A DNA stretch of 64,000 bases. Origin: Rebecca billardiae RCC1528. Taxonomy: Eukaryota > Protista > Haptophyta. Position 1 is the stretch's first letter. Each line of letters opens with the position of its first letter. This document shows, in pieces, positions 11,738-63,077 of the stretch. Made by a program: the position numbers and the translations under genes. The stretch lies in NCBI GenBank assembly GCA_965240325.2, contig OZ251247.1:496001-560000 (forward strand), in the 5' to 3' direction. The notes beneath the pieces are model-generated. The model had not been told where the DNA came from. It worked only from the letters and a program-made list of their open reading frames with translations, and ran no database searches.

Positions 11738-13600
11738 TCAGCATAGCAGCGGCGGGAGCCGCACGATCTGCACGGGCGTGTCCATTGCTTCGGCCTCAGT
11801 CTCAGAGTCACTGTCCTCCAGCGGCGCCACGCTCTGGCTCGCAGAAGCGCCGTGGCCGAGCGCAGCTGAGTGCTTGCCGCACGAGTGCACGGCGCCGTCC
11901 GATGTGACGTACAGCGCGTGGGCCTCGCCGAGCGAGCAATGCACCACGCGCTTGCCAGAGAGGGCGCGCACGCACTTCGGAAGCGGGACCGCCTCGGCCC
12001 TGCGCCCAAGCCCCAGCTGGCCGTCCTCGTTGATCCCAAACGTGTGCACGCTGCCGTCCGCGCCCACCACCGCGCTGCAGCAGGGGCCGGCGCACGAGCG
12101 CACAGCGCGCACGCTTGCCAGGGCCTCGATGCGCTCGAGCTGCGTTGGGGTAACTTCCGTGTCGCCGCCGGTGCCCAGACAGCCGTAGGATGGATCCCCA
12201 ACGCCATGCACGCAGCCCGCCGCGTCCACCACCAGGCTGTGCAGAGCGCCCGCGCTCACATGCACGGCGCGCACGCCCGCAAGCGCCTCGATGCGCCTCG
12301 GCGTGTGCTGTTCCTGCTCGTCGCCGTGGCCGAGACGGCCCTTGTAGCCCCAGCCGCACGAGTAGACGGCGCCTTGCGCAGAGAGCAGTAGCGCGTGCGA
12401 CTCGCCCGCGGCCACTCCGCCCACGCGCACGCCGACCAGTGCCTCGATGCGCGTCGGCTCCCACCGCTCCTTCTTGTCGCCGTGGCCGAGCTGGCCGTAC
12501 TGGTTGCGGCCCCAGCTGTACGCGCAGCCAGCAACGGTGAGCGCGAGGCTGCCGTCGCCACCCGCTGCGATGCACACGACGGGTCCACTCAGCAGTGTGC
12601 CCACGGGCGTGAATGCCCAGCGCGTGGATCCGTCGCCCAGCCCCAGCTGGCCGTACTTGTTGTCGCCGCAGCCGTACACGGTGCCAGCATCGCTCAGCGC
12701 GAGCAGGTGGTGGTCGCCAGCGGCCACGGAGCGCACGCGCACTGCGCTGAGCGAGGCGACGCGCTTTGGCACGCGCACGGGCGGCACGGCCGCATCTGCG
12801 CCATGCGCAATCGCGGCGGGCGCGTAGCGCACGACCATGCCCTCCTCGTCCTCGTCCTCCTCCTCGCCGCACGTGTGGAGCCCGCCCTCCGCGTCCACAA
12901 ACGCGCTAAAGACCGCCAGGTTTTCAGCAGTACCGCACGCGACGGCACATGAGTGCGACAGACTCAGCTCGAGCACGCGCTCCCGCTCGAGTAGCTCCAC
13001 CGTCCACGTGGCCGGCAAAACCGGTAGCGCGCGCTCGTGGCCCCGCGCGCGCGCGCGCTCGCGCAGCGCGTGCTCGACCGGCGAGCGGCCGCCGGGCGCG
13101 CCGCGGAAGAGGCGCGAGACGGCGTTGGCCGCGGCGAGATCACGGGCGCTGCCGACCAGAGACAGTATGCGCACGTGAAGCTCGAACGGCAGCTCGGCAA
13201 GCGTCGGCGCCGACGCCTCGACAGCGGGCACACAGCCGGGGTGCGCCCCGTCCAGCCCACCGCCAGAGGGCTGCACGGGCGTGGGGTGGGCGCTGCCCGC
13301 GGCGACGACGACGTGGCGCGGCGAGCTGCGCCGGCGGAGGCCGTCGTACATCGTCATCGCTGATGCCGCGTGCGTGGAACGCCCGCAGCCCGCGCGGCCG
13401 CAGCGCACGGCGCAGGCCTCGGACGCGAGCGCGCGCTCGAAGAGGCAAACGTTGTGCGCGACGTGCTCCGCGCCGCACGCGAGCTGCGCCCACGGCTGCG
13501 GGCCGATGCGCTCGGAGCACAGAGCGCACACGGCATCGTCTGCGTTGGAGTTCAGAGCGACGGGCGCCTTGGCATCTCGTGCGAGGGGCGTGCGCTGCAT
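11738..13600 (-). CDS. RING-H2-like + F-box-like + 7x RCC1-repeat protein (copy 1, about 620 aa)
   Basis: CALC...C...H..H..C...C....C finger; F-box-like LAELPFELHVRILSLV...RDLAAANAVSRLF; repeated AAG.xH...GxVYxxGxNxxGQLGxG RCC1 motifs. Intronless. First ATG taken as start. Confidence 0.9.
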   Translation of the reverse strand: MQRTPLARDAKAPVALNSNADDAVCALCSERIGPQPWAQLACGAEHVAHNVCLFERALASEACAVRCGRAGCGRSTHAASAMTMYDGLRRRSSPRHVVVAAGSAHPTPVQPSGGGLDGAHPGCVPAVEASAPTLAELPFELHVRILSLVGSARDLAAANAVSRLFRGAPGGRSPVEHALRERARARGHERALPVLPATWTVELLERERVLELSLSHSCAVACGTAENLAVFSAFVDAEGGLHTCGEEEDEDEEGMVVRYAPAAIAHGADAAVPPVRVPKRVASLSAVRVRSVAAGDHHLLALSDAGTVYGCGDNKYGQLGLGDGSTRWAFTPVGTLLSGPVVCIAAGGDGSLALTVAGCAYSWGRNQYGQLGHGDKKERWEPTRIEALVGVRVGGVAAGESHALLLSAQGAVYSCGWGYKGRLGHGDEQEQHTPRRIEALAGVRAVHVSAGALHSLVVDAAGCVHGVGDPSYGCLGTGGDTEVTPTQLERIEALASVRAVRSCAGPCCSAVVGADGSVHTFGINEDGQLGLGRRAEAVPLPKCVRALSGKRVVHCSLGEAHALYVTSDGAVHSCGKHSAALGHGASASQSVAPLEDSDSETEAEAMDTPVQIVRLPPLLC

Positions 13601-13904
13601 GTCGTCGCTGACGCCGTCGCGCGAGCTTGCGGTCCTCTCGCTTGGCGCCGCCGCGAGCGCTGGCACGCCCGCGCTGCAGCCGTGAGGACGGTTGGCCGCG
13701 GTGTCCTGCCACTGGAGAGGCAATCCGGTCAGCTATGACCACTGTCAAACCGCTTAGCGGCAAGGGAGGTCGTCGTAGCGGTACCGCCCTTGGTAGCGGT
13801 GTGCAGCGGGACCGCAGTCGCCGTCAGTCGTCACAACTCTCGATACTAGGCGTGCGTACGTCACACGACGAGTTGTTAAACGAGTCCCCGGGAGTCAACG
13901 CCGC

Positions 13905-15767
13905 TCAGCACAGCAGCGGCGGGATCCGCGCGATCTGCACGGGCGTGGCGACTGCGGCGGCCTCGTTCTCAGACGCTGGGTCCTCCGGCGGCGCCACACT
14001 CTGGCTCGCAGAAGTGCCGTGGCCGAGCGCAGCGGACTGCCTGCCACACGAGTGCACGGCGCCATCCGCGGTGACGAAGAGCGAGTGCGAGCTGCCGAGC
14101 GAGCACTGGATCACGCGCTTACCAGAGTGCGCGTTCACGCACCCGGGCGCCGTCACCGCCTCGGACCTGTGCCCCAGCCCCAGCTGGCCATAGCCGTTGC
14201 TCCCGAACGTGTGCACGCGGCCGTCAGCGCCCAGCACCGCGCTGCTGAACCAGCCAGCACGGGCGCTGACCGCGCGCACGCCCGCCAGCGCCTCGATGCG
14301 CGTGGGCGGGGGCTGCGCATCCCATGATTCTTCGCCCAGGCAGCGGCATGATGGATTTCCGAACCCGTGCACGCAGCCCTCCGCGTCCACCACCAGGCTG
14401 TGCTCCCAGCCCGCGCTCACGTGCACGGCGCGCACGCCCACGAGCGCCTCGATGCGCCTCGGCGTGTGGTGTGACTTCAGGTCGTCGTGACCGAGCTGGC
14501 CAAAGAAGCCCCAGCCGCACGAGTAGACGGCACCACGTGAGGTGACCAGTAGCGTGTGCAAGAGCCCCGCGGCCAAGCCACCCACGCGCACGCCGTCCAG
14601 CGCCTCGATGCGCGTCGGCTCCCACCTGTCCTTCGTGTCGCCGTGGCCGAGCTGGCCGTAGTAGTTGCGGCCCCAGCTGTACGCGCAGCCGGCAACGCTG
14701 AGCGCCAGGCTGCCGTCGCCACCCGCTGCGATGCACACGACGGGTCCACTCAGCAGTGTGCCCACGGGCGTGAATGCCCAGCGCGTGGATCCGTCGCCCA
14801 GCCCCAGCTGGCCGTACTTGTTGTCGCCGCAGCCGTACACGGTGCCAGCATCGCTCAGCGCGAGCAGGTGGTGGTCGCCAGCGGCCACGGAGCGCACGCG
14901 CACTGCGCTGAGCGAGGCGACGCGCTTTGGCACGCGCACGGGCGGCACGGCCGCATCTGCGCCATGCGCAATCGCGGCGGGCGCGTAGCGCACGATCATG
15001 CCCTCCCAGTCCTCGTCCTCCTCCTCGCCGCACGTGACCGTGTGGAGCCCGCCCTCCGCGTCCACAAACGCGCTAAAGACCGCCAGGTTTTCAGCAGTAC
15101 CGCACGCGACGGCACTCGAGTGCGACCGACTCAGCTCGAGCACGCGCTCCCGCTCGAGTAGCCCCACCGTCCACGTGGCCGGCAAAACCGGCAGCGCGCG
15201 CTCGTGGCCCCGCGCGCGCGCGCGCTCGCGCAGCGCGTGCTCGACCGGCGAGCGGCCGCCGGGCGCGCCGCGGAAGAGGCGCGAGACGGCGTTGGCCGCG
15301 GCGAGATCACGGGTGCTGCCGACCAGAGACAGTATGCGCACGTGAAGCTCGAACGGCAGCTCGGCAAGCGTCGGCGCCGACGCCTCGGCAGCGGGCACAC
15401 AGCCGGGGTGGGCCCCTTCCCGCCCACCGCCAGAGGGCTGCACGGGCGCGGGGTGGGCGCTGCCCGCGGCGACGACGACGTGGCGCGGCGAGCTGCGCCG
15501 GCGGAGGCCGTCGTACATCGTCATCGCTGATGCCGCATGCGTGGAACGCCCGCAGCCCGCGCGGCCGCAGCGCACGGCGCAGGCCTCGGACGCGAGCGCG
15601 CGCTCGAAGAGGCAAACGTTGTGCGCGACGTGCTCCGCGCCGCACGCGAGCTGCGCCCACGGCTGCGGGCCGATGCGCTCGAAGCACAGAGCGCACACGG
15701 CATCATCTGCCTCCGAGTCCAGAGCGGCGGGCGCCTTGGCATTGCGTGCGAGGGGCGTGCGCTCCAT
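13905..15767 (-). CDS. RING-H2-like + F-box-like + 7x RCC1-repeat protein (copy 2, about 620 aa)
   Basis: Near-identical to copy 1 in the N-terminal 60%, divergent in blades 4-7. Start MERTPLARN matches copy 1. Confidence 0.9.
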   Translation of the reverse strand: MERTPLARNAKAPAALDSEADDAVCALCFERIGPQPWAQLACGAEHVAHNVCLFERALASEACAVRCGRAGCGRSTHAASAMTMYDGLRRRSSPRHVVVAAGSAHPAPVQPSGGGREGAHPGCVPAAEASAPTLAELPFELHVRILSLVGSTRDLAAANAVSRLFRGAPGGRSPVEHALRERARARGHERALPVLPATWTVGLLERERVLELSRSHSSAVACGTAENLAVFSAFVDAEGGLHTVTCGEEEDEDWEGMIVRYAPAAIAHGADAAVPPVRVPKRVASLSAVRVRSVAAGDHHLLALSDAGTVYGCGDNKYGQLGLGDGSTRWAFTPVGTLLSGPVVCIAAGGDGSLALSVAGCAYSWGRNYYGQLGHGDTKDRWEPTRIEALDGVRVGGLAAGLLHTLLVTSRGAVYSCGWGFFGQLGHDDLKSHHTPRRIEALVGVRAVHVSAGWEHSLVVDAEGCVHGFGNPSCRCLGEESWDAQPPPTRIEALAGVRAVSARAGWFSSAVLGADGRVHTFGSNGYGQLGLGHRSEAVTAPGCVNAHSGKRVIQCSLGSSHSLFVTADGAVHSCGRQSAALGHGTSASQSVAPPEDPASENEAAAVATPVQIARIPPLLC

Positions 15768-18183: not shown

Positions 18184-18588
18184 CTACAGCGCCGTGGGGT
18201 CGTCGTCCCGCGCCGCGTCCTTGAGGAAGCCTCCGCTCTTGAGGCGCTCCTTCTTCGCCTGGGAGCCCATGGACGGGGGCAGGTTGTCCACCTCTCCCAT
18301 CACGTCGCCCAGCGAGAACTGCAGCGCCGCCGCGCCCACGAGCAGCACGCCCACGATGCCCACCAGCAGGGAGTCGGGCGGCAGCTCGACGCCGCCGTCG
18401 GCCGCGTCCGCGAGCGCGGCGAGGGGCGCCGCGGCGACACCGAGCGCGGGCGCGGCCGCGGCGGTGCGCACGGTGCGTGCGGGCAGCCGCGGCGCGCGCG
18501 CGTGGCCCACGCCGCGCGGCGCGGCGCCCTGCGCCAGCGTCGCCAGACCCAGCATGAGCAGCACGCACGCCCAGGTCGCAGGCGCCAT
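18184..18588 (-). CDS. Small single-pass membrane protein with signal + transit + AxA presequence (probable plastid thylakoid protein)
   Basis: MAPATWACVLLMLGLATLAQG (signal), Arg/Ala-rich stretch (transit), APLAALA-D (thylakoid-peptidase-like site), TM LLVGIVGVLLVGAAALQFSL, charged tail. High third-position GC. Confidence 0.7.
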   Translation of the reverse strand: MAPATWACVLLMLGLATLAQGAAPRGVGHARAPRLPARTVRTAAAAPALGVAAAPLAALADAADGGVELPPDSLLVGIVGVLLVGAAALQFSLGDVMGEVDNLPPSMGSQAKKERLKSGGFLKDAARDDDPTAL

Positions 18589-18784
18589 GGTGATGCGAGC
18601 CAAGCAGCCAAGCGACCCCGCCAGCGGGCCAGCGCTGTCGCATCGTCGCCGTGTTTCACTGTGTGACGACCACCCTTGGTGTGACAGCGTCCGGCCGCCC
18701 GGTGTGCATCATTGAATTCATTCTGCCTCCGTTCGTCATCAGCAGCATCTTGCTGCCCTCGGCGGGAGGAGGCTCGGCTTGGTG

Positions 18785-20355: not shown

Positions 20356-21480
20356 CAAGGGCGGTAAGGGCTGTCAACTCCCAGTGGCGGCAGCGCCAGA
20401 GGTTGGTCGCCGCTTCGTCGCTGCGCGGCCTCGCTCCAGCGACTAACTCTCGTGGGCGCCCGCCCTGGGGGGCGAGTGGGGCGCGCACGGCGCGAGCTCC
20501 TGTGGCCGTGTACGCGCGCGCGGAGGCGGCGCGCGTGGCTGGGCAGGTGCTAAGGAGTGTATGTCGCCCTCCCACGCCGCGCGCCTTGCTCGCCGCCGCT
20601 TTCGCCGCGCCTCAGGCCAGCGCGCACGCGTGCGCCGCCTCCAGAGCCAGCCTCGGGCAATCGGCAGCCGCCCGCGCATGTGTGGTGCGCGGTCTGGTCG
20701 GCGCGAGTCGGTCGGGGCCATCGGGCGAGGCTCGCATACTATAGACGCGCGCCATGCCGCCTCGCGCCGCCGCGCGTGGGTTGTCATGGGTCGACACGCA
20801 AGCATCTTAGGTCTGACACGAACTGCAGCACGAATGCGAAAATGCTCATGTTTGGACGCTCATGGAGACGCTGGAGAGCACAATAGACGCGCGCAGGCGA
20901 TGAAGAGCGGGGCAACGCACTCATAGGACGCCGTACAAGCGCCCAATGCGGCCGCCTATCACGCGCATGTGCGCTCACTGTCACGTATTCGAGCTCATTT
21001 CTGCTTGTGCATTCATCGATCAGCTTCCTTCCACAGCTTCACGGGATGGGACCGGGCCCATGCGCGGCGGCGCGAGGCGGCATGGCGCGCGTCTATAGTA
21101 TGCGAGCCTCGCCCGATGGCCCCGACCGACTCGCGCCGACCAGACCGCGCACCACACATGCGCGGGCGGCTGCCGATTGCCCGAGGCTGGCTCTGGAGGC
21201 GGCGCACGCGTGCGCGCTGGCCTGAGGCGCGGCGAAAGCGGCGGCGAGCAAGGCGCGCGGCGTGGGAGGGCGACATACACTCCTTAGCACCTGCCCAGCC
21301 ACGCGCGCCGCCTCCGCGCGCGCGTACACGGCCACAGGAGCTCGCGCCGTGCGCGCCCCACTCGCCCCGCAGGGCGGGCGCCCACGAGAGTTAGTCGCTG
21401 GAGCGAGGCCGCGCAGCGACGAAGCGGCGACCAACCTCTGGCGCTGCCGCCACTGGGAGTTGACAGCCTTCCCGCCCTTG
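20356..21480. mobile_element. Foldback / long-TIR non-autonomous transposon (arms about 425 bp, spacer about 276 bp, TSD CGCCAAT)
   Basis: 20356-20780 is the near-perfect reverse complement of 21057-21480. Ends are CAAGGG...CCCTTG. cgccaat at 20349-20355 and 21481-21487. Confidence 0.9.
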
Positions 21481-23067: not shown

Positions 23068-23416
23068 CACACGGTGCGGTCGGCTCGGCGTCAGCGCTGC
23101 GCGTTGGGAGCTGCGGCGCTGTGTGAGACGCAGACTATGCTGAATCTAGCTGCATGCGTGCCCTCGGTCAACCTCGGTGGCAGTCTGAGCAAAGGACCAT
23201 GTCTGGTGCGATAAACACCGAAGGCTGCTGGCAGCTTACTAATCAGAAGATGGCTCAAACAACCAGAGGTCACAGCACACCATGCATCGTGCCCGGACCG
23301 TGCGCGGTCCGGCAGTGCACAGACTCACAGTGGACCGGATGTTCTTCCGGGTGAGGCGGCACTCGCCGCCGCAAGGGAAAGCGCATCAGCAGGCGGCTCC
23401 GAGTCGCAGCTGCATC

Positions 23417-26400
23417 ATGGAGACAGGGTCCAGCCCTCGTGGCTCGATGGCCCGCTGGCGCTCTGGCCTACCTCAGTCGGCCCTTCGGGAGTCTGTGAGG
23501 GTTGCCTGCAACCTGCAACCGGGAAGCTCACGCCGCATATCGCGGTGCTGCAGCGGACGGTTTGGGCGTGTGCGCCCTTGTGGCCGCCGCCGTTGTCTCA
23601 TGGAGACAGGGTCCAGCCCTCGTGGCTCGATGGCCCGCTGGTGCTCTGGCCTGCCTCAGTCGGCTCTTCGTGAGTCGGTGAGGGTTGCCTGCAACCTGCA
23701 ACCGGGAAGCTCACGCCGCATATCGCGGTGCTGCAGCGGACGGTCTGGGCGTGTGCGCCCTTGTGGCCGCCGCCGTCGTCTCATGGAGACAGGGTCCAGC
23801 CCTCGTGGCTCGATGGCCCGCTGGTGCTCTGGCCTGCCTCAGTCGGCTCTTCGTGAGTCGGTGAGGGTTGCCTGCAACCTGCAACAGGGAAGCTCACGCC
23901 GCATATCGCGGTGCTGCAGCGGACGGTCTGGGCGTGTGCGCCCTCGTGGCCGCCGCCGTCGTCTCATGGAGACAGGGTCCAGCCCTCGTGGCTCGATGGC
24001 CCGCTGGTGCTCTGGCCTACCTCAGTCGGTCCTTCGGGAGTCGGTGAGGGTTGCCTGCACCTGCAACCGGGAAGCTCACGCAGCGTACAGCTGTGCTGCA
24101 GCGGCCGGTTTGGGTGTGTGTGCCCTTGTGGCCGCCGCCGTTGTCTCATGGAGACAGGGTCCAGCCCTCGTGGCTCGATGGCTCGCTGGTGCTCTGGCCT
24201 ACCTCAGTCGGCTCTTCGTGAGTCGGTGAGGGTTGCCTGTAACCTGCAACCGGGAAGCTCACGCCGCATATCGCGGTGCTGCAGCGGACGGTCTGGGCGT
24301 GTGCGCCCTTGTGGCCGCCGCCGTTGTCTCATGGAGACAGGGTCCAGCCCTCGTGGCTCGATGGCCCGCTGGTGCTCTGGCCTGCCTCAGTCGGCTCTTC
24401 GTGAGTCGGTGAGGGTTGCCTGCAACCTGCAACCGGGAAGCTCACGCCGCATATCGCGGTGCTGCAGCGGACGGTCTGGGCGTGTGCGCCCTTGTGGCAG
24501 CAGCCGTTGTCTCATGGAGACAGGGTCCAGCCCTCGTGGCTCGATGGCCCGCTGGTGCTCTGGCCTGCCTCAGTCGGTCCTTCGGGAGTCGGTGAGGGTT
24601 GCCTGCACCTGCAACCGGGAAGCTCACGCAGCGTACAGCTGTGCTGCAGCGGCCGGTTTGGGTGTGTGTGCCCTTGTGGCCGCCACCGTTGTCTCATGGA
24701 GACAGGGTCCAGCCCTCGTGGCTCGATGGCTCGCTGGTGCTCTGGCCTACCTCAGTCGGCTCTTCGTGAGTCGGTGAGGGTTGCCTGCAACCTGCAACCG
24801 GGAAGCTCACGCCGCATATCGCGGTGCTGCAGCTGACGGTTTGGGCGTGTGCGCCCTTGTGGCCGCCGCCGTTGTCTCATGGAGACAGGGTCCAGCCCTC
24901 GTGGCTCGATGGCCCGCTGGTGCTCTGGCCTGCCTCAGTCGGCTCTTCGTGAGTCGGTGAGGGTTGCCTGCAACCTGCAACCGGGAAGCTCACGCCGCAT
25001 ATCGCGGTGCTGCAGCGGACGGTCTGGGCGTGTGCGCCCTCGTGGCCGCCGCCGTCGTCTCATGGAGACAGGGTCCAGCCCTCGTGGCTCGATGGCCCGC
25101 TGGTGCTCTGGCCTGCCTCAGTCGGCTCTTCGTGAGTCGGTGAGGGTTGCCTGCAACCTGCAACCGGGAAGCTCACGCAGCGTACAGCTGTGCTGCAGCG
25201 GCCGGTTTGGGTGTGTATGCCCTTGTGGCCGCCGCCGTTGTCTCATGGAGACAGGGTCCAGCCCTCGTGGCTCGATGGCCCGCTGGTGCTCTGGCCTGCC
25301 TCAGTCGGCTCTTCGTGAGTCGGTGAGGGTTGCCTGCAACCTGCAACCGGGAAGCTCACGCCGCATATCGCGGTGCTGCAGCGGACGGTCTGGGCGTGTG
25401 CGCCCTCGTGGCCGCCGCCGTCGTCTCATGGAGACAGGGTCCAGCCCTCGTGGCTCGATGGCCCGCTGGTGCTCTGGCCTACCTCAGTCGGTCCTTCGGG
25501 AGTCGGTGAGGGTTGCCTGCACCTGCAACCGGGAAGCTCACGCAGCGTACAGCTGTGCTGCAGCGGCCGGTTTGGGTGTGTATGCCCTTGTGGCCGCCGC
25601 CGTTGTCTCATGGAGACAGGGTCCAGCCCTCGTGGCTCGATGGCCAGCTGGTGCTCTGGCCTGCCTCAGTCCCAGGCTCTTCGTGAGTCGGTGAGGGTTG
25701 CCTGCAACCGCCTGCAACCTGGAAGCTCACGCAGCATTACATTGCGGTGCTGAGGCGCGGCGGACGGTCTGGGCGTGTGTGCCCTGGTGGCCGCCGGCGC
25801 CGTTCAGTCTCATGCTGAGACACGCGGGCGGTCCCGGCAGGCCCGTGTGGCTCGATGGCCCGCTGATGCTCGGGCCTACCTCAGTCCCGGGCTCTTCGTA
25901 AGTCGGTGAGGGTTGCCTGCAACCGCCTGCAACCTGGAAGCTCACACAGCACAACGCGCAAGGCGGTGCTGAGGCGCAGACGGTCTGTATGTGTGTGCCC
26001 TCGTGGCCGCCGCAGTTGTCTCATTATGATGACAAGTAACTGTAACTGCTATGAACTGGACAGGGTCCAGCCCGCGTGGCTCGATGGCCCGCAGATGCTT
26101 GGGCCTACCTCAGTCCCGGGCTCTTCGTGAGTCGGTGAGGGCGTTGCCTGCAACCGCCTGCAACCCCTGGAAGCTCACGCTGACACGCAGCACATTGCGC
26201 GGTGCTGTTCGGCGCGCGGACGGTCTGGGCGTGTGCGCCCTGGTGGCCACCGCCATCATGTCTCATGGAGACAGGGTCCAGTCATCTTGGCTTGATGGCC
26301 CGCTGCTGGTGCTCGGGCCTCCCTCAGTCGGCTCTTCGTGAGTCGTCGGTGAGGGTTGCCTGCAGCCTTTACCTCATTCGACCCTTCGTGCGTCTGTGAG

Positions 26401-46177: not shown

Positions 46178-46186
46178 GTATATATA

Positions 46187-46219: not shown

Positions 46220-49200
46220 GTCTAACCACTCCGCCATGCCCTGCTCGCTCGAAGCGTCGAGCACGACCGAGAGCTGGATGGTCGTGGCGTGAACTGCGTC
46301 TTGGGACAGTCCACTATGATGATCATGATTGGGACACGATCATGTTACATAGGTCGGGATTTTACCAACGAACGACGGGCGCTGGCAGTGCGGAGGCGCA
46401 GCTGCCCGTGGTCGAGAGGGCGCCCGTGAGGTCCGTCAGTCACGGAGGTCGACGGCCGATCTGGCTGACCAGACAGCACGGGTTGCACAGCACCGTTATC
46501 CCAGACAGAGGGTGGGAGGGTGGGCAAACAGTGAACCGCCGCCGCGGAGCTGACGCAGCAGCACGTGAGCTGCTGGACGAGAATGTGATGCCGGACGAGC
46601 GACGACGCGGCTGCGGTGCGGCGCTGCAGGGCGGAGGCGCTGACAGCAGCAACCTCACCGAGCAGAGGGGACTACCAAAGCAGCGTATACACCTCCTGTG
46701 TGCCGAGCTCACAAGAGTGGTCGGAGGAGAGTGTAGCGTGCGGTGTCGTGGGCCCCCTGCTCGGCTCGGCGCCTTGTGTCATGGCGCCCCCGTACCTTGG
46801 GCCGAGCCGCGCCGAGGCCAGAAGAGTCGCCTCGGATGGAACAGGAATCGCCGAGCAAGTCCTGCAGGCGGTGCCCGGTGCCGACCGGATTGGCTGCCGA
46901 AAAGGGGTCCGACCAGGACTGCGCGCGCTGGGCGGCGGGCGCCCCGGCCGGACAGCTGGTTGATGATGCCAAGCGAGCCGGATCTTGGTGTCGCTCTTAG
47001 ACACTCAGTTATTGTGCCAATAACGCCACGTCTAACCACTCCGCCATGCCCTGCTCGCTCGAAGCGTCGAGCACGACCGAGAGCTGGATGGTCGTGGCGT
47101 GAACTGCGTCTTGGGACAGTCCACGATGATGATCATGATTGGGACACGATCATGTTACATAGGTCGGGGGATTTTACCAACGAACGACGGGCGCGGGCAG
47201 TGCGGAGGCGCAGCTGCCCGTGGTCGAGAGGGCGCCCGTGAGTCCCGTTTATAAGTTAGAGCGGGCGTCCAAGTAGTGGTTGATGAATCCCGTTAAAAGA
47301 AGAGAAAGATTGGGGACTGCGCGTAGCGTTCACGCGCGCGCGGTGGCGCGGTGTGTGCCGCGTGTTGAGCGAGAGCGTGCGGCACATGGCGCGACGCGCG
47401 TGCGCGAGGCGTGCGCATATCTCAAACAGTGAACCGCCGCCGCGGAGCTGACGCAGCAGCACGTGAGCTGCTGGACGAGAATGTGATGCCGGACGAGCGA
47501 CGACGCGGCTGCGGTGCGGCGCTGCAGGGCGGAGGCGCTGACAGCAGCAACCTCACCGAGCAGAGGGGACTACCAAAGCAGCGTATACACCTCCTGTGTG
47601 CCGAGCTCACAAGAGTGGTCGGAGGAGAGTGTAGCGTGCGGTGTCGTGGGCCCCCTGCTCGGCTCGGCGCCTTGTGTCATGGCGCCCCCGTACCTTGGGC
47701 CGAGCCGCGCCGAGGCAATTTTACCAACGAACGACGGGCGCGGGCAGTGCGGAGGCGCAGCTGCCCGTGGTCGAGAGGGCGCCCGTGAGGTCCGTCAGTC
47801 ACGGAGGTCGACGGCCGATCTGGCTGACCAGACAGCACGGGTTGCACAGCACCGTTATCCCAGACAGAGGGTGGGAGGGTGGGCAAACAGTGAACCGCCG
47901 CCGCGGAGCTGACGCAGCAGCACGTGAGCTGCTGGACGAGAATGTGATGCCGGACGAGCGACGACGCGGCTGCGGTGCGGCGCTGCAGGGCGGAGGCGCT
48001 GACAGCAGCAACCTCACCGAGCAGAGGGGACTACCAAAGCAGCGTATACACCTCCTGTGTGCCGAGCTCACAAGAGTGGTCGGAGGAGAGTGTAGCGTGC
48101 GGTGTCGTGGGCCCCCTGCTCGGCTCGGCGCCTTGTGTCATGGCGCCCCCGTACCTTGGGCCGAGCCGCGCCGAGGCCAGAAGAGTCGCCTCGGATGGAA
48201 CAGGAATCGCCGAGCAAGTCCTGCAGGCGGTGCCCGGTGCCGACCGGATTGGCTGCCGAAAAGGGGTCCGACCAGGACTGCGCGCGCTGGGCGGCGGGCG
48301 CCCCGGCCGGACAGCTGGTTGATGATGCCAAGCGAGCCGGATCTTGGTGTCGCTCTTAGACACTCAGTTATTGTGCCAATAACGCCACGTCTAACCACTC
48401 CGCCATGCCCTGCTCGCTCGAAGCGTCGAGCACGACCGAGAGCTGGATGGTCGTGGCGTGAACTGCGTCTTGGGACAGTCCACGATGATGATCATGATTG
48501 GGAGACGATCATGTTACATAGGTCGTCGGGATTTTACCAACGAACGACGGGCGCGGGCAGTGCGGAGGCGCAGCTGCCCGTGGTCGAGAGGGCGCCCGTG
48601 AGTCCCGTTTATAAGTTAGAGCGGGCGTCCAAGTAGTGGTTGATAAATCCCGTTAAAAGAAGAGAAAGATTGGGGACTGCGCGTAGCGTTCACGCGCGCG
48701 CGGTGGCGCGGTGTGTGCCGCGTGTTGAGCGAGAGCGTGCGGCACATGGCGCGACGCGCGTGCGCGAGGCGTGCGCATATCTCAAACAGTGAACCGCCGC
48801 CGCGGAGCTGACGCAGCAGCACGTGAGCTGCTGGACGAGAATGTGATGCCGGACGAGCGACGACGCGGCTGCGGTGCGGCGCTGCAGGGCGGAGGCGCTG
48901 ACAGCAGCAACCTCACCGAGCAGAGGGGACTACCAAAGCAGCGTATACACCTCCTGTGTGCCGAGCTCACAAGAGTGGTCGGAGGAGAGTGTAGCGTGCG
49001 GTGTCGTGGGCCCCCTGCTCGGCTCGGCGCCTTGTGTCATGGCGCCCCCGTACCTTGGGCCGAGCCGCGCCGAGGCCAGAAGAGTCGCCTCGGATGGAAC
49101 AGGAATCGCCGAGCAAGTCCTGCAGGCGGTGCCCGGTGCCGACCGGATTGGCTGCCGAAAAGGGGTCCGACCAGGACTGCGCGCGCTGGGCGGCGGGCGC

Positions 49201-49287: not shown

Positions 49288-49494
49288 ATATATACATATA
49301 TATGTATATGTATATGTATATATGTATATGTATACATACATACATACATACATACTACATACATACATACATACATACATACATACATACATACATACAT
49401 ACATACATACATACATACATACATACATACATACATACATACATACATACATACATACATACATACATACATACATACATACATACACACACAC
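49288..49494. repeat. (TA)n/(TACA)n/(CA)n compound microsatellite
   Basis: Read directly. Confidence 0.95.
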
Positions 49495-52129
49495 TGAGTG
49501 CCGGAAAACTGCTCAGGGTGACGTTTTAAGTTGTCCGCACCACTAGTCGAATCATCGGACAATTCTGAAGCGGTGCGCCTAAATTCGGCGCACCATAGGC
49601 GCGTCGAATCGTGGCACAGACCTTGGTAGCAGGCCACACCTGAGCGCGCTGCGCGCGCCGACGCGCGCTCGGCGCGGGCAAAAAATCATGCGCCGTTGGC
49701 ATTACGCAGCCCCGCGCAGCGCTGTGCTCGAGCTCGGCGGCGGCGAAAGCGGGCGGGCGCACACGGCGGTGCCCGTGCGCGCTGCTCCGAGCGCAGCTGC
49801 GGCCACCCCGGCGGCATAACGCCGGTCGAGGGCACGAAAACCGATTTTTCGGGAAAATGCAGAGCAGCGGCGCCCGAGCGCGCCCGAGCTCGTCGCAGCA
49901 CAGTCTCCTGGTGGCTGCGCCCCGTGAAGCCACGCCACGCGGGGCGCTGGCGTGCGCGTGGCCTGCGCCCACCGTGCGCTGCCCGATCATGGCCGTCGAC
50001 CGCTCCGAGCGCCTCACCACGCGTGCTCGAGCCCACCGATACTGACGCCCGAGCACGGTGCCGGCAGCGCTCGCAGGTGGGCGTCGGAGAAAACACGCCG
50101 GCCGAACGAGCTTGAAGCGTCCGCCGCGATGCCAACGGCAGCGGACGACGTGCGCGCCACCTCGGCGCCAGTCGCCCAGCCCTTGCGCGGCGGTGCGGGC
50201 TCGCTCGTTCGCCGCCATCAGCTGCGCGCGCGCAGCCCGATCACTGCCCGCTGGTTCTGTTGTCGAGCAGCTGCGGCCTGCCACGCGCACTGCCGGACAT
50301 TGAGCCACAGCGCGAGCACGCGCCTCGTCTGGCACGCGCGAGCACTCAGCATCGTGCGTGGCCACCATGACGCGCCCATCTGCGCCAGCAGCGATGAGCA
50401 CGCCGCCGTTCAGCTCGCATCGGGCTCGCTCGCGACGCAGCAACGCGCGGCCGTAGCGGCAGCAGCGGCGCCGTCGAGCACGCGCAGCAAACAAATATGC
50501 AGCGCGGGCGAGTCGACGGTCTGGAAAATGCGCGATCACGCCACAGCAGGCTGGCAGAGCCCGCCCGAGCTGCAGCATGCCGTAGGTGCTGCCCCAAGCT
50601 CTCGACTGCCCGTAAGCGGCGGCATGTGCGGCGGCGCCGGCGGCGGCCATGCTGCCACGCCGTTGCGCGCCGCGGGGCGCCGTCGGCACCTCCGTGGTGA
50701 AGCGCACAGAGCTCGAGCCCACGGGGGCTGGCGACCGTCAAACCGACACCCCATGACGCGGGGCTGCGTGCGCCAGCTGCGCGCACTCCGTGGGCCCACC
50801 TAGCCCGCTCGAGCAGCTCGCCTTGGGTGCGCGCAGCGGCTCGAGCACACTGGTATGGGACGCCTGCCTGCGGTGCCGCCGAGCACATGCGGCCGACGGT
50901 CACTCAGCACGGGCGACTCGACGGCGGCGAGCAGGCGCGACGGCCTCGCCGCGCCGCGGAAAAGCCTGCCCGGGCTGCAGCACGCCGTAGGAGCAGCCCA
51001 GCGCCCTCCTCCGCCCTCCAGCTTCGGCGCGCGCAGCAGGCCCGGCGGCGGCCATGCTGGCGTGCCCAAGCATGAAGATGGGCGCGGCCGGCCGCGCCGT
51101 CGCAAAGCGCGCAGAACTCGAGCTCGGGGGGGCGGACGGCCGCCAAACTGGCGCGGCAGGACGTGGCACTGCGTGCGCCAGCTGCGCGCACCCGCTGCGC
51201 CCGCGTGGCCCGTGCGAGCGCCGCGCCTCGAGCACACGCAGCTGCTCGACACAGCCACGGCAGTGTGGCTTGTGCGCGTGCACGTGATCAGTCTCAGCTC
51301 TGAGGCGCGCGCTCAGGAGGGCTGCGGCCGGGCCGAGCGCGATCTGCGCGGACGGTACAGCCTGGCGGCTCATGCCAGCCAGCCCAAAGCCCGCTCCGCC
51401 ATCCGCGTCATGGCGCTCCAGCCTCTCGCGTGCTGCGCTGCAGCCGCGCTCGGCAAAGACGTCGCCCAGCCCGCCTTGCACGCGGCTGAGCAGTGGCAGC
51501 CAGGCGAAGCGTCGTCGCGGGCGAGGCTGCGCTGGGTGATGCGGCTCGGGTCGGTGGGCAAGTCGCACCCCGCCGTCGGTCGCCTCCACGCCTCAGGCTC
51601 GCTCGAGGTCAAAGACAACTGCGCGGCGCGGCGTTTGCGCGGGCGGGCCGCGGGCGTGGCGGGGTGTACGCGTGCAATGTCACAGCCTCCCACACAATTT
51701 CAGGAGGGTGAGACGCACCGCCAGCGGCACCCGCACACAATCCCACCCTGCGCGAGCCACCTGCCGTGTCGACTGAAGCATCAGGCTCGGGCGCAACCGC
51801 GGGCGGCGCATGCAAGAAGCTCGCGAAACGCACCGCGCGCGCCGTGAGGGCGAAAGGAGAGCACCCGTCAGGGCGGCGAGGAACTTGCCCAGCGCCACGC
51901 GGAAGACGACCCCAGCCCGCGTCGACGCATAGTCGGGCCCGCGAGCAGCCTCGTCGGTCTTCGCCGAGTAGATCGCGCCGCGAGCCGAGGCACCGCTCGT
52001 TTGAGGCTCCGTCCGCCGCGAAGTCGTCGCGGCTTCCACCCGAGTTCCACTGTCCGGCCGAGACCGGATTCGCTGACTCGAGCTGCGGACCGTCCGAAGC
52101 GTCACGGAAAATTCCAATCCTGCACTGTG
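49492..52129. mobile_element. Probable second CACAGTG-type element with an imperfect left end, inserted in the microsatellite
   Basis: Right end reverse-complements to CACAGTGCAGGA...GTGACG; left end reads CAC(TG)AGTGCCGGA...GTGACG. CA flanks both sides. Internal degenerate duplication of about 405 bp (about 50540-50830 vs 50950-51250). Confidence 0.5.
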
Positions 52130-52133
52130 CATG

Positions 52134-52392
<259 letters not shown>

Positions 52393-54234: not shown

Positions 54235-54265
<31 letters not shown>

Positions 54266-59102: not shown

Positions 59103-59361
59103 GGGCTGACCGGCGTCCAGCTGCTACTGCTCCTCGACGGCGTCCACCGCTATGGCGGCCGGCCTCGCTCGTCGCTCGTCGCGCCGCCGCCGCGGCTCCT
59201 GATCAAGAGCAGCTAAAGCCGAGCAAGGGAGGGCGCCGGAGGGGGCCCGCCCATCAAAGGCTGTTCATGAGCTGGTCCGGGCTGGGAGTTCGGGAGACGG
59301 GAGTTGGGAGCCGGACAGGCCAACCGTCGCCGTGCGTCCTTGGTCAGAGCGCGCAGCAAGG

Positions 59362-60840
59362 ATGGCTCAACGCGAGGGCTCCGTGGCGTGCTCGGTGGCG
59401 TCGGCGCCGCGGCTGGCCGAGCTGCCCGCCGAGGTGATCGAGCGCATCCTGCTCTTGGTTGGCCGCCCGCGTGACATCGCTGCTGCTAACGCTGCCTCGC
59501 GCCTCTTCCGTGGCGCGCCCGGCGGCCGCTCGCCGGTCGAGCACGCGCTGCGCGAGCGCGCTCGTGCTCGCGGGCACGCGCGCGCGCTGCCAACCGAGCT
59601 GCCGGCGGGCGTGCGCAGCTGGACGGAGGAGCTCTTGGCGCGCGAGAGCGTGCTCGTACTTGCGAGTGAGCACGCGTCTCCTGTGGCGGCTGGCGACTGC
59701 TTCAGCGCGTTTGTGGACGCGGAGGGCGGGCTGCACATGTGCGGCGAGGAGGAGGAGGTGGACGACGACGGGCACAAGACGGGCGCGTACGTCCCGCCCA
59801 TAGCGACCAGCCACTCGGATCTGACGGCAATGCGTGTGCCCACAAGCGTGGCCTCGCTCGCCGCGGTGCGCGTGCGCTCTGTGGCCGCTGGCACTGACCA
59901 CCTGCTCGCACTGACCGACGCCGGCACCGTGTACGGCTGCGGCTACAACGACTTCGGCCAGCTCGGGCTGGGTGACGACGACGAGAGGCGTGCATTCGCG
60001 CACGTTCAGGCGCTCGCGGGCGAGATCAGTGTGGCCATCACGGCTGGCTATCGCCACAGCCTCGCGCTCACCGCCGCTGGGTGTGCGTACAGCTGGGGCT
60101 GCAACGATGGCGGCCAGCTCGGCCACGGCGACACGAAGGAGCGGTGGGAGCCGACGCGCATCGAGGCGCTGGATGGCGTGCGCGTTGGAGGGGTGGGCGC
60201 AGGAGGCGATCGCACGCTGCTTCTCACCGCGCGAGGCGCCGTGTACTCTTTCGGCGGAGCCTCGGCCGGCATGCTTGGCCACGACGACGAGGAGGATCAG
60301 CTCACGCCGAGGCGCATCGAGGCGCTCGCGGGCGTGCGCGCCGTGCACGTGAGCGCTGGCTACGAGCACAGCCTGGTGGTAGACGCAGCGGGCGCTTCGT
60401 ACTCGTTTGGCGGGGGCAGTCATGGTCAGCTTGGACGGGACGAACGGCGCTGCCGTGTCCCCGCGCGCATCGAGGCCCTTGCATGCGTGCGCGCCGTCCG
60501 CGCGTGCGCTGGCTCCTACAGCAGCGCTGTGCTGGGCGCGGATGGCAGCGTGCACACGTTCGGGAACAACTGGCACGGCCAGCTGGGGCACCCGGGCTCT
60601 CGCAAGCTGCAGCTGCCCATGCGTGTGCACGCGCTCGCGCATGAGCGCGTGTTCTGCTACGCCGTGGGCCGCACCCACTCGCTGTTTGCGAGTGCGGACG
60701 GCGCAGCGTACTCGTGCGGCAAGCAGTCGGCCGCGCTCGGCCACGGCGTGAGCGAGGCTACTGCTGAGGCTGGGTCGCTGCGGTCGCCCACGCGCATCCA
60801 GCAGCTGCTGCGCGTGGGCGCACGGCCGGCCTCGGGCTGA
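59362..60840 (+). CDS. F-box-like + 7x RCC1-repeat protein (copy 12, about 492 aa)
   Basis: LAELPAEVIERILLLVGRPRDIAAANAASRLF, then seven blades. Confidence 0.9.
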   Translation: MAQREGSVACSVASAPRLAELPAEVIERILLLVGRPRDIAAANAASRLFRGAPGGRSPVEHALRERARARGHARALPTELPAGVRSWTEELLARESVLVLASEHASPVAAGDCFSAFVDAEGGLHMCGEEEEVDDDGHKTGAYVPPIATSHSDLTAMRVPTSVASLAAVRVRSVAAGTDHLLALTDAGTVYGCGYNDFGQLGLGDDDERRAFAHVQALAGEISVAITAGYRHSLALTAAGCAYSWGCNDGGQLGHGDTKERWEPTRIEALDGVRVGGVGAGGDRTLLLTARGAVYSFGGASAGMLGHDDEEDQLTPRRIEALAGVRAVHVSAGYEHSLVVDAAGASYSFGGGSHGQLGRDERRCRVPARIEALACVRAVRACAGSYSSAVLGADGSVHTFGNNWHGQLGHPGSRKLQLPMRVHALAHERVFCYAVGRTHSLFASADGAAYSCGKQSAALGHGVSEATAEAGSLRSPTRIQQLLRVGARPASG

Positions 60841-61210
60841 GCATGGCTGGGTGATGTCGGCACCGTTCTGAGGCCGTGGCGCGGGGAGCACGGGTGTGTG
60901 GCTGTCACTGTGATGGGTGCACGCGGGTCATAACTCATATCCGATGCCAACCAGACGCCGACGCCGACGCCTCACGCATGTGCGTCACGACTGGCGACAA
61001 CCGCCGACAGCAGCCGGACGTGGACGACATTGAGGCGTGTCGAGCGCGCGACGATCTGCGATGCAGCATGGGCGCCGGTGCATAGCATGTTTCCGCACTC
61101 GTAAGTCGTAGGTGCCCCAATCCGATGAGACAAGGCCGTCGTGCCACCGGGGCGTGGATTTCGGTTTGCCCGAGACCGGCCAACTGTAAAGCACAGTGCC
61201 TGCTGTACAG
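60825..61210 (+). repeat. 3'-flank segment duplicated at about 63082-63455
   Basis: ccggcctcgggctgagca...gcacagtgcctgctgtacagta follows both copy 12 and copy 13. Confidence 0.85.
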
Positions 61211-61383
61211 TAGTTACGACATGATGCATCAGTATAGCGTCGTACTACGACTACTGCCTTGCGCACGTTAAAACAAATAATATAATAAACAAATAAACTG
61301 TACGGTAGTGTGTACAGCAAAACTGTACTACGATACTGATGCCGCTACTACTCAGATCATGAGTCGATCTTCGTCGCCCCTTA

Positions 61384-61579
61384 CAGGTGGATACGGGCTA
61401 ACTGGACACAGGGGCTATCTGGACACTCAGCGGGCGGCGGCCCTTGCTGTGGCGGAACTCCAGGGACCCCCTGAAGTCCGTCCCTGGCGCCCCTTCGACC
61501 CCAATGCTCCCAGGGAGGCCTCCGCGTGAGTTAGTTGGGTCGGCCACTGTCCAGATCACCCGTATCCACCTTGAACCTG
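61384..61579. mobile_element. MITE of about 195 bp, Tc1/mariner-pogo-like ends with TA flanks
   Basis: ta-CAGGTGGATACGGG..CTGGACA versus TGTCCAG..CCCGTATCCACCT(tgaa)CCTG-ta. The right end is slightly rearranged. Confidence 0.65.
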
Positions 61580-61607
61580 TAGTGTGGCGGCGAAAGCGAG
61601 CACGAGG

Positions 61608-63077
61608 ATGGCGGCTCATCAACGCAAGACGAGTAGCGCCGTGGCGTGCGCGGCGGCGCCGGCGCCGCGGCTGGCCGAGCTGCCCGCCGAGGTGATCGAG
61701 CGCATCCTGCTCGCGGTTCGCAGGACGCGTGATATCGCCGCCGCCAACGCCACGGCGCGCCTCTTCCGCGGCGCACCCGGCGGTCGCTCGCCGGTCGAGC
61801 ACGCGCTGCGCGAGCGCGCTCGTGCTCGCGGGCACGCGCGTGCGCTGCCGACCGAGCTGCCGGCGGGCGTGCGCAGCTGGACGGAGGAGCTCTTGGCGCG
61901 CGAGAGCGTGCTCGTGCTTTCGAGTGAGCACGCGTCTCCCGTGGCGGCTGGCGACAGCTTCAGCGCGTTTGTGGACGCGGAGGGCGGGCTGCACACGTGC
62001 GGCGAGGAGGAGGAGGTGGACGACGACGGGCACAAGACGGGCGCGTACGTCCCGCCCATAGCGATCGGCCACTCGGATCTGACGGCAATACGTGTGCCCA
62101 CAAGCGTGGCCTCGCTCGCCGCGGTGCGCGTGCGCTCTGTGGCCGCTGGCGAGCACCACCTGCTTGCGCTGAGCGATGCCGGCGCCGTGTATGGCTGCGG
62201 CAAGAACGACCAAGGCCAACTCGGGCTGGGTGACGACGACGAGAGGCGTGCATTCGCGCACATTCAGGCGCTCGAGAGCGAGGCCATTGTCGGCATCGCC
62301 GCTGGCTTTTACCACAGTCTCGCGCTCGCCGCCGCTGGCTGTGCGTACAGCTGGGGCGGCAACTACTGGGGCCAGCTTGGCCACGGCGACAAGAAGGAGC
62401 GGTGGGAGCCGACGCGCATCGAGGCGCTGGACGGCGTGCGCGTGGGCGGAGTGGCCGCAGGTGAAGCCCACACGCTGCTTCTCACCACGCGAGGCGCCGT
62501 GTACTCGTGTGGTGACGGCATCTTAGGCGCTCTGGGCCACGACGACGAGGAGGATCAGCTCACGCCGAGGTGCATCGAGGCGCTCGCGGGCGTGTGCGCC
62601 GTGCACGTGAGCGCGGGCGCTGGTCACAGCCTGGTGGTGGACGCAGTGGGAAGCGTGCACTCCTTCGGCTGGGGGGGAGGAGGCCTCCCCGGCGATGGAG
62701 ACGAGGGCCCCCAGCGCGTGCCCAAACGTGTCGAGGCGCCGGCGGGCGTGCGCGTCGTGCGCGCGTGCGCCGGCCCCTTCTGCAGTGCGGTGCTGGGCGC
62801 AGACGGCAGCGTGCACACGTTTGGGCACAACGACTTCGGGCAGCTGGGGCACGGCATCGATGGCGATTTTAAGCTGCCGGAGCGCGTGCTCGCCCTTGCG
62901 CATGAGCGCGTGTTCTGCTACGCCGTGGGCCGCACCCACGCGCTGTACGTGACAGCGCATGGATGTGTGTACTCGTGCGGCCAGCACTCGGCAGCACTCG
63001 GCCACGGCGTCAGCATGGCCGCAGAGCCTGGGTCACTGCGGACGCCCACGCGCATCGAGCAGCTGCCGCGTTTGTGA
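61608..63077 (+). CDS. F-box-like + 7x RCC1-repeat protein (copy 13, about 489 aa), a mosaic of other copies
   Basis: LAELPAEVIERILLAVRRTRDIAAANATARLF, then seven blades. Confidence 0.9.
   Translation: MAAHQRKTSSAVACAAAPAPRLAELPAEVIERILLAVRRTRDIAAANATARLFRGAPGGRSPVEHALRERARARGHARALPTELPAGVRSWTEELLARESVLVLSSEHASPVAAGDSFSAFVDAEGGLHTCGEEEEVDDDGHKTGAYVPPIAIGHSDLTAIRVPTSVASLAAVRVRSVAAGEHHLLALSDAGAVYGCGKNDQGQLGLGDDDERRAFAHIQALESEAIVGIAAGFYHSLALAAAGCAYSWGGNYWGQLGHGDKKERWEPTRIEALDGVRVGGVAAGEAHTLLLTTRGAVYSCGDGILGALGHDDEEDQLTPRCIEALAGVCAVHVSAGAGHSLVVDAVGSVHSFGWGGGGLPGDGDEGPQRVPKRVEAPAGVRVVRACAGPFCSAVLGADGSVHTFGHNDFGQLGHGIDGDFKLPERVLALAHERVFCYAVGRTHALYVTAHGCVYSCGQHSAALGHGVSMAAEPGSLRTPTRIEQLPRL

Follow-up and report, generated by a model that had tools for sequence, protein, structure and literature searches.

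A tandem array of thirteen F-box-like/RCC1-propeller genes in the haptophyte Rebecca billardiae, with diversifying selection on loop residues of the propeller

Introduction

What is recognised by a row of neighbouring genes that hold one protein frame nearly constant and differ from copy to copy at the same few surface residues? The question is raised by a 64,000-nucleotide stretch of the genome of the haptophyte Rebecca billardiae RCC1528 (GenBank assembly GCA_965240325.2, contig OZ251247.1, forward-strand positions 496,001 to 560,000), analysed here and referred to as the window, with position 1 at its first letter. Between positions 11738 and 63077 the window holds 13 open reading frames (ORFs), homologous over their whole length, in which an N-terminal F-box-like module precedes a propeller of seven RCC1-like blades. 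A first-pass annotation, made from the letters alone, had described them as an array of intact genes varying at equivalent positions of each blade and had proposed a diversifying repertoire of intracellular receptors that tag foreign or non-self proteins for degradation.

The 13 genes are read as intron-less tandem paralogues that are probably functional; their scaffold is under purifying selection, and loop residues on one face of the propeller are under positive selection. The account that fits best, and to which somewhat better than even credence is given, is a repertoire of receptors for SCF (Skp1–Cullin–F-box)-type ubiquitin ligases, recognising varied and changing protein targets for ubiquitylation; a role in defence is a more tentative proposition, and is weighed separately below.

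Thirteen copies of one propeller scaffold

A tblastn search of the window with copy 13 returned exactly 13 full-length matches (59–77% identity) and zero fragments, and Pfam detected RCC1/RLD domains in 13 of 13 copies (E 1e-63 to 1e-82), with scores of 215–278 bits for PF25390 (cut-off 150) and 191–222 bits for PF00415 (cut-off 21.7), in agreement with the earlier description of 13 paralogues on a shared scaffold. The AlphaFold2 (AF2) model of copy 13, built from 38 aligned sequences, has a mean predicted local distance difference test (pLDDT) score of 92.6 and a predicted template modelling (pTM) score of 0.90. Foldseek places residues 108–484 of the model on UVR8 (template modelling (TM) score 0.93–0.94, root-mean-square deviation ~2.1, ~380 columns), followed in the fold ranking by HERC2, HERC1, RPGR and RCC1; by sequence, the best relatives of the propeller in the PDB are HERC2 RLD3 and UVR8, and the top 30 AlphaFold/Swiss-Prot structural matches include UVR8, HERC3/4, RPGR and RCBTB, and neither FBXO24 nor Saf1. 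A UVR8-type ultraviolet-B photoreceptor was considered and rejected: the copies have no conserved Trp triad, and Trp occurs sporadically at the two positions preceding a conserved His, which are the most variable in the protein.

The array genes are single exons of 482–530 codons, or 620 codons in copies 1 and 2, with copies 1–3 on the minus strand and the remaining ten on the plus strand. Except in copies 1 and 2, the F-box-like motif begins 10–24 codons after the start ATG, and longer ORF extensions further upstream are without the coding signature of the genes (G+C of about 0.86 at third codon positions (GC3) and about 0.55 at second positions (GC2)). Copies 1 and 2 carry a 133-codon N-terminal extension that is coding-like (GC3 0.89 in copy 1) and holds a Cys/His-rich segment.

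That these frames are open is, by itself, weak evidence of function, because long ORFs are common in DNA of 70% G+C: the G+C content of the window is ~70%, and antisense ORFs within it are as long as 638 aa. The earlier argument that intact ORFs imply selection is therefore weakened in its original form, and is carried instead by three further observations. With ~30 weighted stop-creating mutations per gene, the neutral expectation at a divergence of 0.1–0.2 per site is 3–6 nonsense hits per copy, and the copies have none; every indel among the 13 copies in the MAFFT alignment is a multiple of three; and 60–63% of codons evolve at an omega (the ratio of nonsynonymous to synonymous rates, dN/dS) of ~0.09, for which reasons the copies are regarded as functional. 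The description of all 13 as intact holds in so far as all are uninterrupted; copy 8, however, is structurally incomplete, with 11 residues of blade 5 missing, and may be impaired though its frame is still open.

At the nucleotide level, a single run of at least 14 nt is invariant in 13 of 13 copies: it spans 19 nt, codes for SAFVDAE in blade 1 and exceeds the length reached in every one of 2000 permutations of third-position invariance. A general pattern of nucleotide-invariant islands was rejected, there being one island only.

Variation recurs at equivalent loop positions of each blade

Across blades 2–6, repeat positions 4, 5, 21, 23 and 24 show on average 7–8 different residues among the 13 copies and positions 32–34 show 5–6.6, against 1–3 at most others. 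The variability profiles of the five blades are alike (mean Spearman r 0.50, with a maximum of 0.33 over 2000 circular-shift controls), so that the proposed concentration of variation at equivalent blade sites is borne out, and the strings read out by the first-pass annotation for the blade 2 AAG-xx-H motif, the CG-xNxx motif that follows it and the blade 4 loop were all reproduced in the MAFFT alignment.

In the copy 13 model, the first two strands of each sequence repeat are joined by a loop that holds positions 4 and 5, and a further loop, which follows the third strand, holds positions 21–24. Alternate loops of an antiparallel meander share an axial face; by this topology, both variable loops of the modelled blades would open on one face, with the turn between the second and third strands and the connection between repeats on the other. 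In a phmmer alignment, the two variable residues before the conserved His stand opposite the Trp and Arg of the GWRHT motif of UVR8, both of which lie in the UVR8 dimer interface (PMC4501546), and the earlier equation of the G-xx-H position with this face is thereby supported. Relative to the rest of blades 2–6, the variable positions are enriched 8.7-fold in Tyr, 4.5-fold in Trp, 3.7-fold in Phe and 2.7-fold in Asp, a residue makeup typical of protein-binding hot spots.

Positive selection on loops, purifying selection on the scaffold

Pairwise Nei–Gojobori estimates gave a median nonsynonymous divergence (dN) of 0.27 and a median synonymous divergence (dS) of 0.48. At 25 periodic sites dN exceeded dS in 78 of 78 pairs, with a ratio of ~2.5–5, against ~0.5 elsewhere. 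Further tests by maximum likelihood (ML) were run because the Nei–Gojobori method is unreliable at a GC3 of 0.87, and because the periodic sites had been picked after inspecting the data. Under pairwise ML (GY94 codon model with F3x4 frequencies; blades 2–6; six disjoint pairs), omega at the periodic sites was above 1 in six of six pairs and significantly so in four, with a summed likelihood ratio test (LRT) statistic of 64 (p 6e-12); for the remainder of the protein omega was 0.19–0.30. Cross-validation, in which the 30 most variable columns for each pair were taken from the other 11 copies only, gave omega above 1 in all six pairs, five of them significant (summed LRT 44, p 7e-8). The closest pairs likewise have omega above 1, copies 7 and 8 giving 2.4–3.0 (p 0.003–0.006).

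Site models were fitted with an implementation of our own; to accommodate recombination, the alignment was divided into seven segments, each with its own IQ-TREE codon tree. Models with positively selected sites were preferred throughout, M2a over M1a (LRT 113, p 2e-25), M8 over M7 (LRT 145, p 3e-32) and M8 over M8a (LRT 88, p 3e-21); against an overall omega of 0.31 under M0, M2a assigned an omega of 6.0 to 4.8% of sites and M8 an omega of 3.8 to 6.4%, with the 60–63% of sites at ~0.09 already mentioned marking the constraint on the scaffold. Null simulations under M1a on the same trees returned LRT values of 0, 0 and 0.24 in three data sets, and simulated parameters were recovered. The periodic positions account for 14 of the 27 sites with a posterior above 0.5 under M8, and for seven of the 14 sites above 0.95 under M2a (Fisher p 1e-6). 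The signal is strongest in blades 4 and 5; in copy 13 the posterior for omega above 1 reaches 1.0 at residue 286, 0.998 at residue 303, 0.99 at residue 305 and 1.0 at residue 306. The diversification claimed at the outset is thus upheld, nonsynonymous change exceeding synonymous change at loop sites and the rest of the protein being under purifying selection; by the strands of the model, the selected sites lie in the loops between the first and second and between the third and fourth strands, apart from the few named below.

Exchange of tracts between copies

The copies are mosaics of one another, a leading feature of the locus that the first-pass annotation had not stressed. Between copies 1 and 2 there are 13 differences over 666 nt in the first half of the core (98.0% identity), against 141 over 708 in the second half (80.1%; p 1.5e-29). 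Copy 13 resembles, in order, copy 12 (96.7% nucleotide identity), copy 10 over blades 1–3 (94.6–97.5%), copy 3 over blade 4 (93.8%), no copy, and copy 7 at its 3' end (91.3%); for blade 4, copy 3 would be a possible donor or recipient, judging by sequence identity. Over blades 5–6, at window positions 62568-62867, copy 13 reaches no more than 72% identity with any of the other window copies, in contrast to 91–98% in the flanks, and a donor of this tract, if one exists, must be at another place in the genome. Trees of the segments are incongruent, and the tracts measure from about one blade to a few blades, with ends not exactly at blade boundaries. Exchange between paralogues is thus demonstrated, by gene conversion or unequal crossing-over.

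An F-box-like module and a family-specific linker

All copies share the N-terminal motif L-x2-LP-x-E-[VL]-[IL]-x-R-[IV]-[LI] ... D-[LI]-A ... S/A-R-L-F, within which the L-P, hydrophobic heptad and D-L positions of F-boxes are kept, and S-R-L-F stands in place of the canonical C-[KR]-x-W. PF12937 (F-box-like) is reported at the same place in nine of the 13 copies, at 13.5–21.3 bits (cut-off 24.3), and the copy 13 model places N-terminal helices where those of an F-box would be. Few parts of the protein are as conserved as this module, in which 26 of 84 alignment columns are invariant, and the helical linker that follows contains near-invariant SPVEHALRERARARGH and W-x2-E-L segments across the copies.

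The assignment gains most from relatives in metagenomes. Proteins of the same length and architecture, 33–37% identical over 86–96% of copy 13, exceed the Pfam cut-offs for PF12937 and often for PF00646, and hhalign matches the N-termini of the window to the N-terminal module of these relatives with 99.1% probability (E 1.7e-18). Searched alone against 1.84 billion representatives, the profile of the module, motif and linker together, retrieved 771 proteins at E<=0.001, of which 211 were at E<=1e-10; among 39 full-length matches examined with Pfam, RCC1 was found in 39, F-box-like in 26 and F-box in nine at E<=0.001. On this evidence from the family, the N-terminus of the copies is taken to comprise a divergent F-box and, after it, a helical linker specific to the family; we infer that it would dock on Skp1 of an SCF-type ubiquitin ligase. 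The F-box of the first-pass annotation is thus supported indirectly, through the relatives; in the window itself the HMM (hidden Markov model) matches are sub-threshold.

Upstream of the F-box-like motif of copies 1 and 2, the spacing of the Cys/His-rich segment bears a resemblance to RING-H2 in sequence, with no Pfam RING match at E<=0.1.

Relatives in marine plankton

The window copies and P0001, a protein 54% identical to them and encoded on a Logan contig of 69.7% G+C, form one clade with 99% support in the Shimodaira–Hasegawa-like approximate likelihood ratio test (SH-aLRT), so that the expansion appears largely lineage-specific. More distant relatives are found on eukaryote-like marine metagenome contigs of 61–62% G+C, with split kinase, EF-hand and PX genes. 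An atlas look-up places clusters combining F-box and RCC1 mostly in haptophytes, and lists the FBXO24 cluster among its feature matches (rank 10, score 0.94). A wide environmental distribution is shown for the combination of F-box-like module and RCC1 propeller, and the family is widespread in marine eukaryotic plankton.

A single case points beyond the algae. P0016, itself F-box plus RCC1, is encoded beside a second RCC1-propeller gene on the 32-kb metagenome scaffold GROS21-1_SAMEA9561430_METAG-scaffold_102 (50% G+C), which is dense in ORFans and encodes a VLTF3 late transcription factor (88 bits, cut-off 25); the scaffold probably belongs to a giant virus that carries homologues of the algal family. 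P0016 groups with a different subfamily than the window copies. Scans of IMG/VR with copy 13, P0016 and the alignment of the 13 copies, by a method requiring near-exact peptide words, returned no viral relatives.

Surroundings of the array

Twenty ORFs of 190–400 codons that lie between the copies have no Pfam match, viral hallmarks included, and most are taken to be spurious because their G+C content is flat across codon positions. The decayed transposon ORFs with which the first-pass annotation had contrasted the array are not borne out by these ORFs, and the spacers hold a satellite, microsatellites and other repeats. The satellite comprises ~14 units of 183 nt, most of them 91–99% identical, and the long ORFs running through it are without a coding signature; the spacer between copies 11 and 12, of lower G+C, contains repeats 98–100% identical at spacings of 898, 461 and 899 nt; and the 412-nt inverted repeat between copies 4 and 5 (100% identical, 276-nt spacer) may have arisen as a foldback element, by a recent inversion-duplication or as an artefact of the assembly.

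Two other ORFs are coding-like. One, of 349 codons (GC3 0.92), is divergently oriented to copy 12, contains an internal duplication with PGTRCHFSNW ... WQLN ... SPRG ... VLGW, has no Pfam match, and begins with M-G-C-G, a possible acylation signal by sequence. The other, in the spacer between copies 3 and 4, is short (GC3 0.90), with a signal-peptide-like start and a hydrophobic segment. At the beginning of the window (76–79% G+C), protein-kinase-like segments are split between frames, which suggests an intron-containing kinase gene adjoining the intron-less array.

Table 1. Positions of the array copies, of features within them and of their surroundings in the window; the last row refers to the metagenome scaffold.
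Feature	Position	Strand	Remarks
Start of window	1-8000		Protein-kinase-like segments in ORFs 4550-6961 and 5905-7860
Copy 1, 620 aa	11738..13600	-	Cys/His-rich extension, F-box-like motif, linker and RCC1 propeller
Invariant 19-nt run, copy 1	12889-12907		Encodes SAFVDAE
Cys/His-rich segment, copy 1	13382..13528	-	C-x2-C-x13-C-x3-H-x2-H-x2-C-x10-C-x3-C; equivalent place in copy 2 within 15369-15767
Copy 2, 620 aa	13905..15767	-	Architecture as copy 1
Copy 3, 521 aa	16080..17645	-	No F-box-like match reported by Pfam at E<=0.1; motif nonetheless aligns with other copies
Short coding-like ORF	18187-18708	-	Between copies 3 and 4
Copy 4, 505 aa	18785..20302	+	
Inverted repeat, 412 nt	20369-20780 / 21057-21468		Between copies 4 and 5
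Copy 5, 490 aa	21595..23067	+	Upstream ORF extension without coding signature
Satellite, 183-nt unit	23328-25820		
Copy 6, 484 aa	31364..32818	+	
Copy 7, 482 aa	33200..34648	+	
Copy 8, 487 aa	34953..36416	+	In-frame 11-residue (33-nt) deletion, two strands of blade 5 gone
Copy 9, 509 aa	36708..38237	+	Most divergent of the copies
Copy 10, 507 aa	38621..40144	+	
Copy 11, 530 aa	44384..45976	+	
Repeats, 98-100% identical	46525-49082		Between copies 11 and 12
Microsatellite, 8 nt	49309-49565 and 52081-52330		Two blocks
Coding-like ORF, 349 codons	58053-59102	-	
Copy 12, 492 aa	59362..60840	+	
Copy 13, 489 aa	61608..63077	+	Mosaic; AF2 model
F-box-like motif, copy 13, residues 22-56	61671..61775	+	Predicted helices 27-36, 40-49 and 51-54
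Conserved helical linker, copy 13, residues 62-108	61791..61931	+	Predicted helices 62-73 and 91-108; family-specific
Seven-bladed RCC1-like propeller, copy 13, residues 109-484	61932..63059	+	Pfam PF25390/PF00415, Foldseek
Invariant 19-nt run, copy 13	61962-61980		Encodes SAFVDAE
Blade 4 hypervariable loops, copy 13, residues 286-306	62463..62525	+	Strongest cluster of positively selected codons
Noted genes on GROS21-1_SAMEA9561430_METAG-scaffold_102	274-1167(-), 8366-9790(-), 10001-11692(+)		VLTF3-bearing scaffold of P0016

Discussion

The reading favoured here, that of an SCF-receptor repertoire, would run as follows. In each copy, the three-helix F-box-like motif would dock Skp1 and the propeller would serve as substrate receptor, binding its substrates by the face that UVR8 uses to dimerise; we infer that these substrates are diverse. 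The sequences show the array evolving by duplication and by exchange of roughly blade-sized tracts between paralogues, with strong purifying selection on the scaffold and diversifying selection on about five loop residues per blade, rich in Tyr, Trp, Phe and Asp, and each copy thus presents a different predicted binding surface on one frame. The targets would most likely be varied, changing proteins recognised for ubiquitylation. Viral or otherwise foreign proteins are a plausible if speculative target class, and it is rather doubtful, if well within the range of serious possibilities, that the array serves defence.

An expansion of SCF receptors with no part in defence is a possible alternative, though an unlikely one, and differs from the favoured reading in the nature of the targets only: these would be endogenous proteins, or determinants of self/non-self or mating recognition as with S-locus F-box proteins, or parties to intragenomic conflict, and the size of the family might have changed by birth-death drift. 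All the architectural and evolutionary evidence is common to both accounts, no feature of the window connects the array with infection, and large polymorphic F-box families have been described with no proven immune role in plants (PMC3030570) and nematodes (PMC8120010). Pure drift, however, fails to predict an omega of 4–6 on one face or the Tyr/Trp/Asp-rich makeup of that face.

Two groups of observations weigh against the SCF-receptor reading, the first of them concerning the N-terminus. The window N-termini all fall under the Pfam gathering score, and four of the 13 copies have no reported F-box match; a profile of the 13 N-termini searched against PDB sequences retrieved no F-box chain and chance matches only; and the isolated N-terminal model, small and helical (107 residues, pLDDT 75.8), has no significant fold match (best E 2.9 with Foldseek, best Z 4.5 with VIA-align), with the F-box-plus-linker regions of Fbw7 (Foldseek E 9.3) and Cdc4 (VIA Z 3.5, rank 40) at chance level only. 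Together with the replacement of C-[KR]-x-W by S-R-L-F, and with the majority of RCC1-like proteins not being F-box proteins, these results could indicate that the module is an F-box relic that has lost Skp1 binding, leaving stand-alone binding or scaffolding propellers (e.g. small-GTPase regulators or adaptors). Such a relic seems improbable for a module as conserved as this one, retained by all 771 representatives, joined to RCC1 in every full-length case examined and keeping the characteristic F-box positions; the RING-H2-like segment of copies 1 and 2 also hints at ubiquitin chemistry.

The second group concerns selection. A handful of the selected sites fall outside the main-face loops: residues 110, 117 and 151 are in blade 1 or the long insert of that blade, residue 295 is in a turn of the opposite face, and residue 442 is in blade 7. 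The codon models were our own, with branch lengths held constant apart from a single scale factor, trees fitted per segment so that recombination within segments was ignored, and site posteriors obtained by naive empirical Bayes. Variability at fourfold sites was somewhat but not significantly higher beside variable codons (0.38) than at a distance from them (0.24; p 0.14). A locally raised mutation rate may contribute; targeted hypermutation of the loops is conceivable and is not needed. That the signal of positive selection is altogether an artefact, with unconstrained loops at an omega of ~1 and dN/dS inflated by gene conversion, saturation or GC-biased codons, is very unlikely. Recombination, which inflates site-model tests, is pervasive in the array, the hypervariable codons are near saturation (64% of pairs differ at two or three nucleotides), and synonymous sites are strongly GC-biased. 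Per-segment trees, F3x4 frequencies and tree-free pairwise ML nonetheless all return omega above 1, closest pairs included, M8 is preferred to M8a, in which omega may equal 1, and the null simulations behave as expected.

An origin of the family in giant viruses, or its movement between them and their hosts, which would make the array an endogenised or selfish viral gene set, can be given almost no credence: the VLTF3-bearing scaffold with P0016 and its RCC1 neighbour and the intron-less state of all genes in the window would fit it, but the codon-position G+C of the copies matches that of the other coding-like genes in the window, no viral hallmark was found by Pfam among the intervening ORFs, other relatives are on eukaryote-like contigs, the IMG/VR scans are without relatives, and P0016 belongs to a different subfamily.

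Comparison with known systems

The closest analogue of the array in its mode of evolution is the HNWD/het-d/het-e family of WD40 NOD-like receptors (NLRs) of Podospora anserina (Paoletti et al. 2007, PMC1805685; Chevanne et al. 2010, PMC2873952), where diversifying selection acts at four interaction-surface residues of each repeat, and exchange of repeats occurs both inside single paralogues and from one paralogue to another (PMC1805685). Both systems combine conserved propeller repeats, a few selected surface positions per repeat and exchange of repeat-sized tracts between paralogues. The fungal WD40 domain, however, is carried on a NOD-like receptor with death-effector domains and varies in repeat number, whereas the array has a fixed seven RCC1-like blades and an F-box-like partner; exchange in the alga takes place between genes of a tandem array; and non-self recognition is a demonstrated role of the fungal family and a candidate role of the array.

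In domain logic, the closest systems are the expanded F-box families of nematodes and plants, S-locus F-box genes included (PMC8120010; PMC3030570), and the analogy drawn with them by the first-pass annotation holds: tandem expansions are lineage-specific, the substrate-binding domain evolves fast, and the Skp1-docking end, predicted as such in the array, is conserved. Birth-and-death drift of family size has been proposed for plant FBX genes. The C-terminal domains of those families are FBA, FTH, Kelch, LRR or similar, in contrast to the RCC1 propeller here, and the F-box of the array is divergent and below the Pfam threshold.

F-box and RCC1 occur together in FBXO24 of animals and Saf1 of yeast, which to our knowledge are single-copy and not hypervariable. 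The domain order is that of the array, an F-box and then an RCC1-like propeller, but neither protein is among the 30 best AlphaFold/Swiss-Prot matches and the array propeller is nearer to UVR8 and HERC, and the combination in the array is probably of independent origin. The RCC1-like domains of UVR8 and HERC2, its best matches in sequence and fold, differ in turn from the array, which has neither the Trp triad nor a HECT domain. In the body of papers searched, whole-word searches included, none was found on an RCC1-propeller F-box array or on this family, and occurrences of RCC1 in algal genome papers proved to be names of Roscoff culture-collection strains such as RCC138 and RCC1871; what is new here is a predicted diversifying F-box receptor family with the RCC1 propeller as its variable module.

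Implications

Very little is known of how marine microalgae, which are under heavy viral mortality, recognise intracellular parasites, and the locus offers a concrete and testable candidate, belonging to a family with at least 771 representative clusters in public metagenomes. The homologue on the giant-virus-like contig is a direct lead for host–virus work. Apart from the immune question, a natural hypervariable RCC1 propeller, with a fixed frame and ~25–35 predicted variable contact residues, is valuable in its own right.

The most far-reaching possibility, to be held tentatively and with well under even confidence, is an intracellular immune repertoire of the alga, in which dozens to hundreds of F-box/RCC1 receptors, all built on one propeller frame and differing in their Tyr/Trp/Asp-rich surfaces, which blade-scale gene conversion would keep reassorting between arrays, would direct proteins of giant viruses or other parasites to the proteasome, and in which copies captured by the viruses would be decoys or would redirect the SCF ligase of the host. 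If true, such a repertoire would give a major group of marine phytoplankton an RCC1-propeller equivalent of TRIM5-like restriction and of the WD40 NLRs of fungi.

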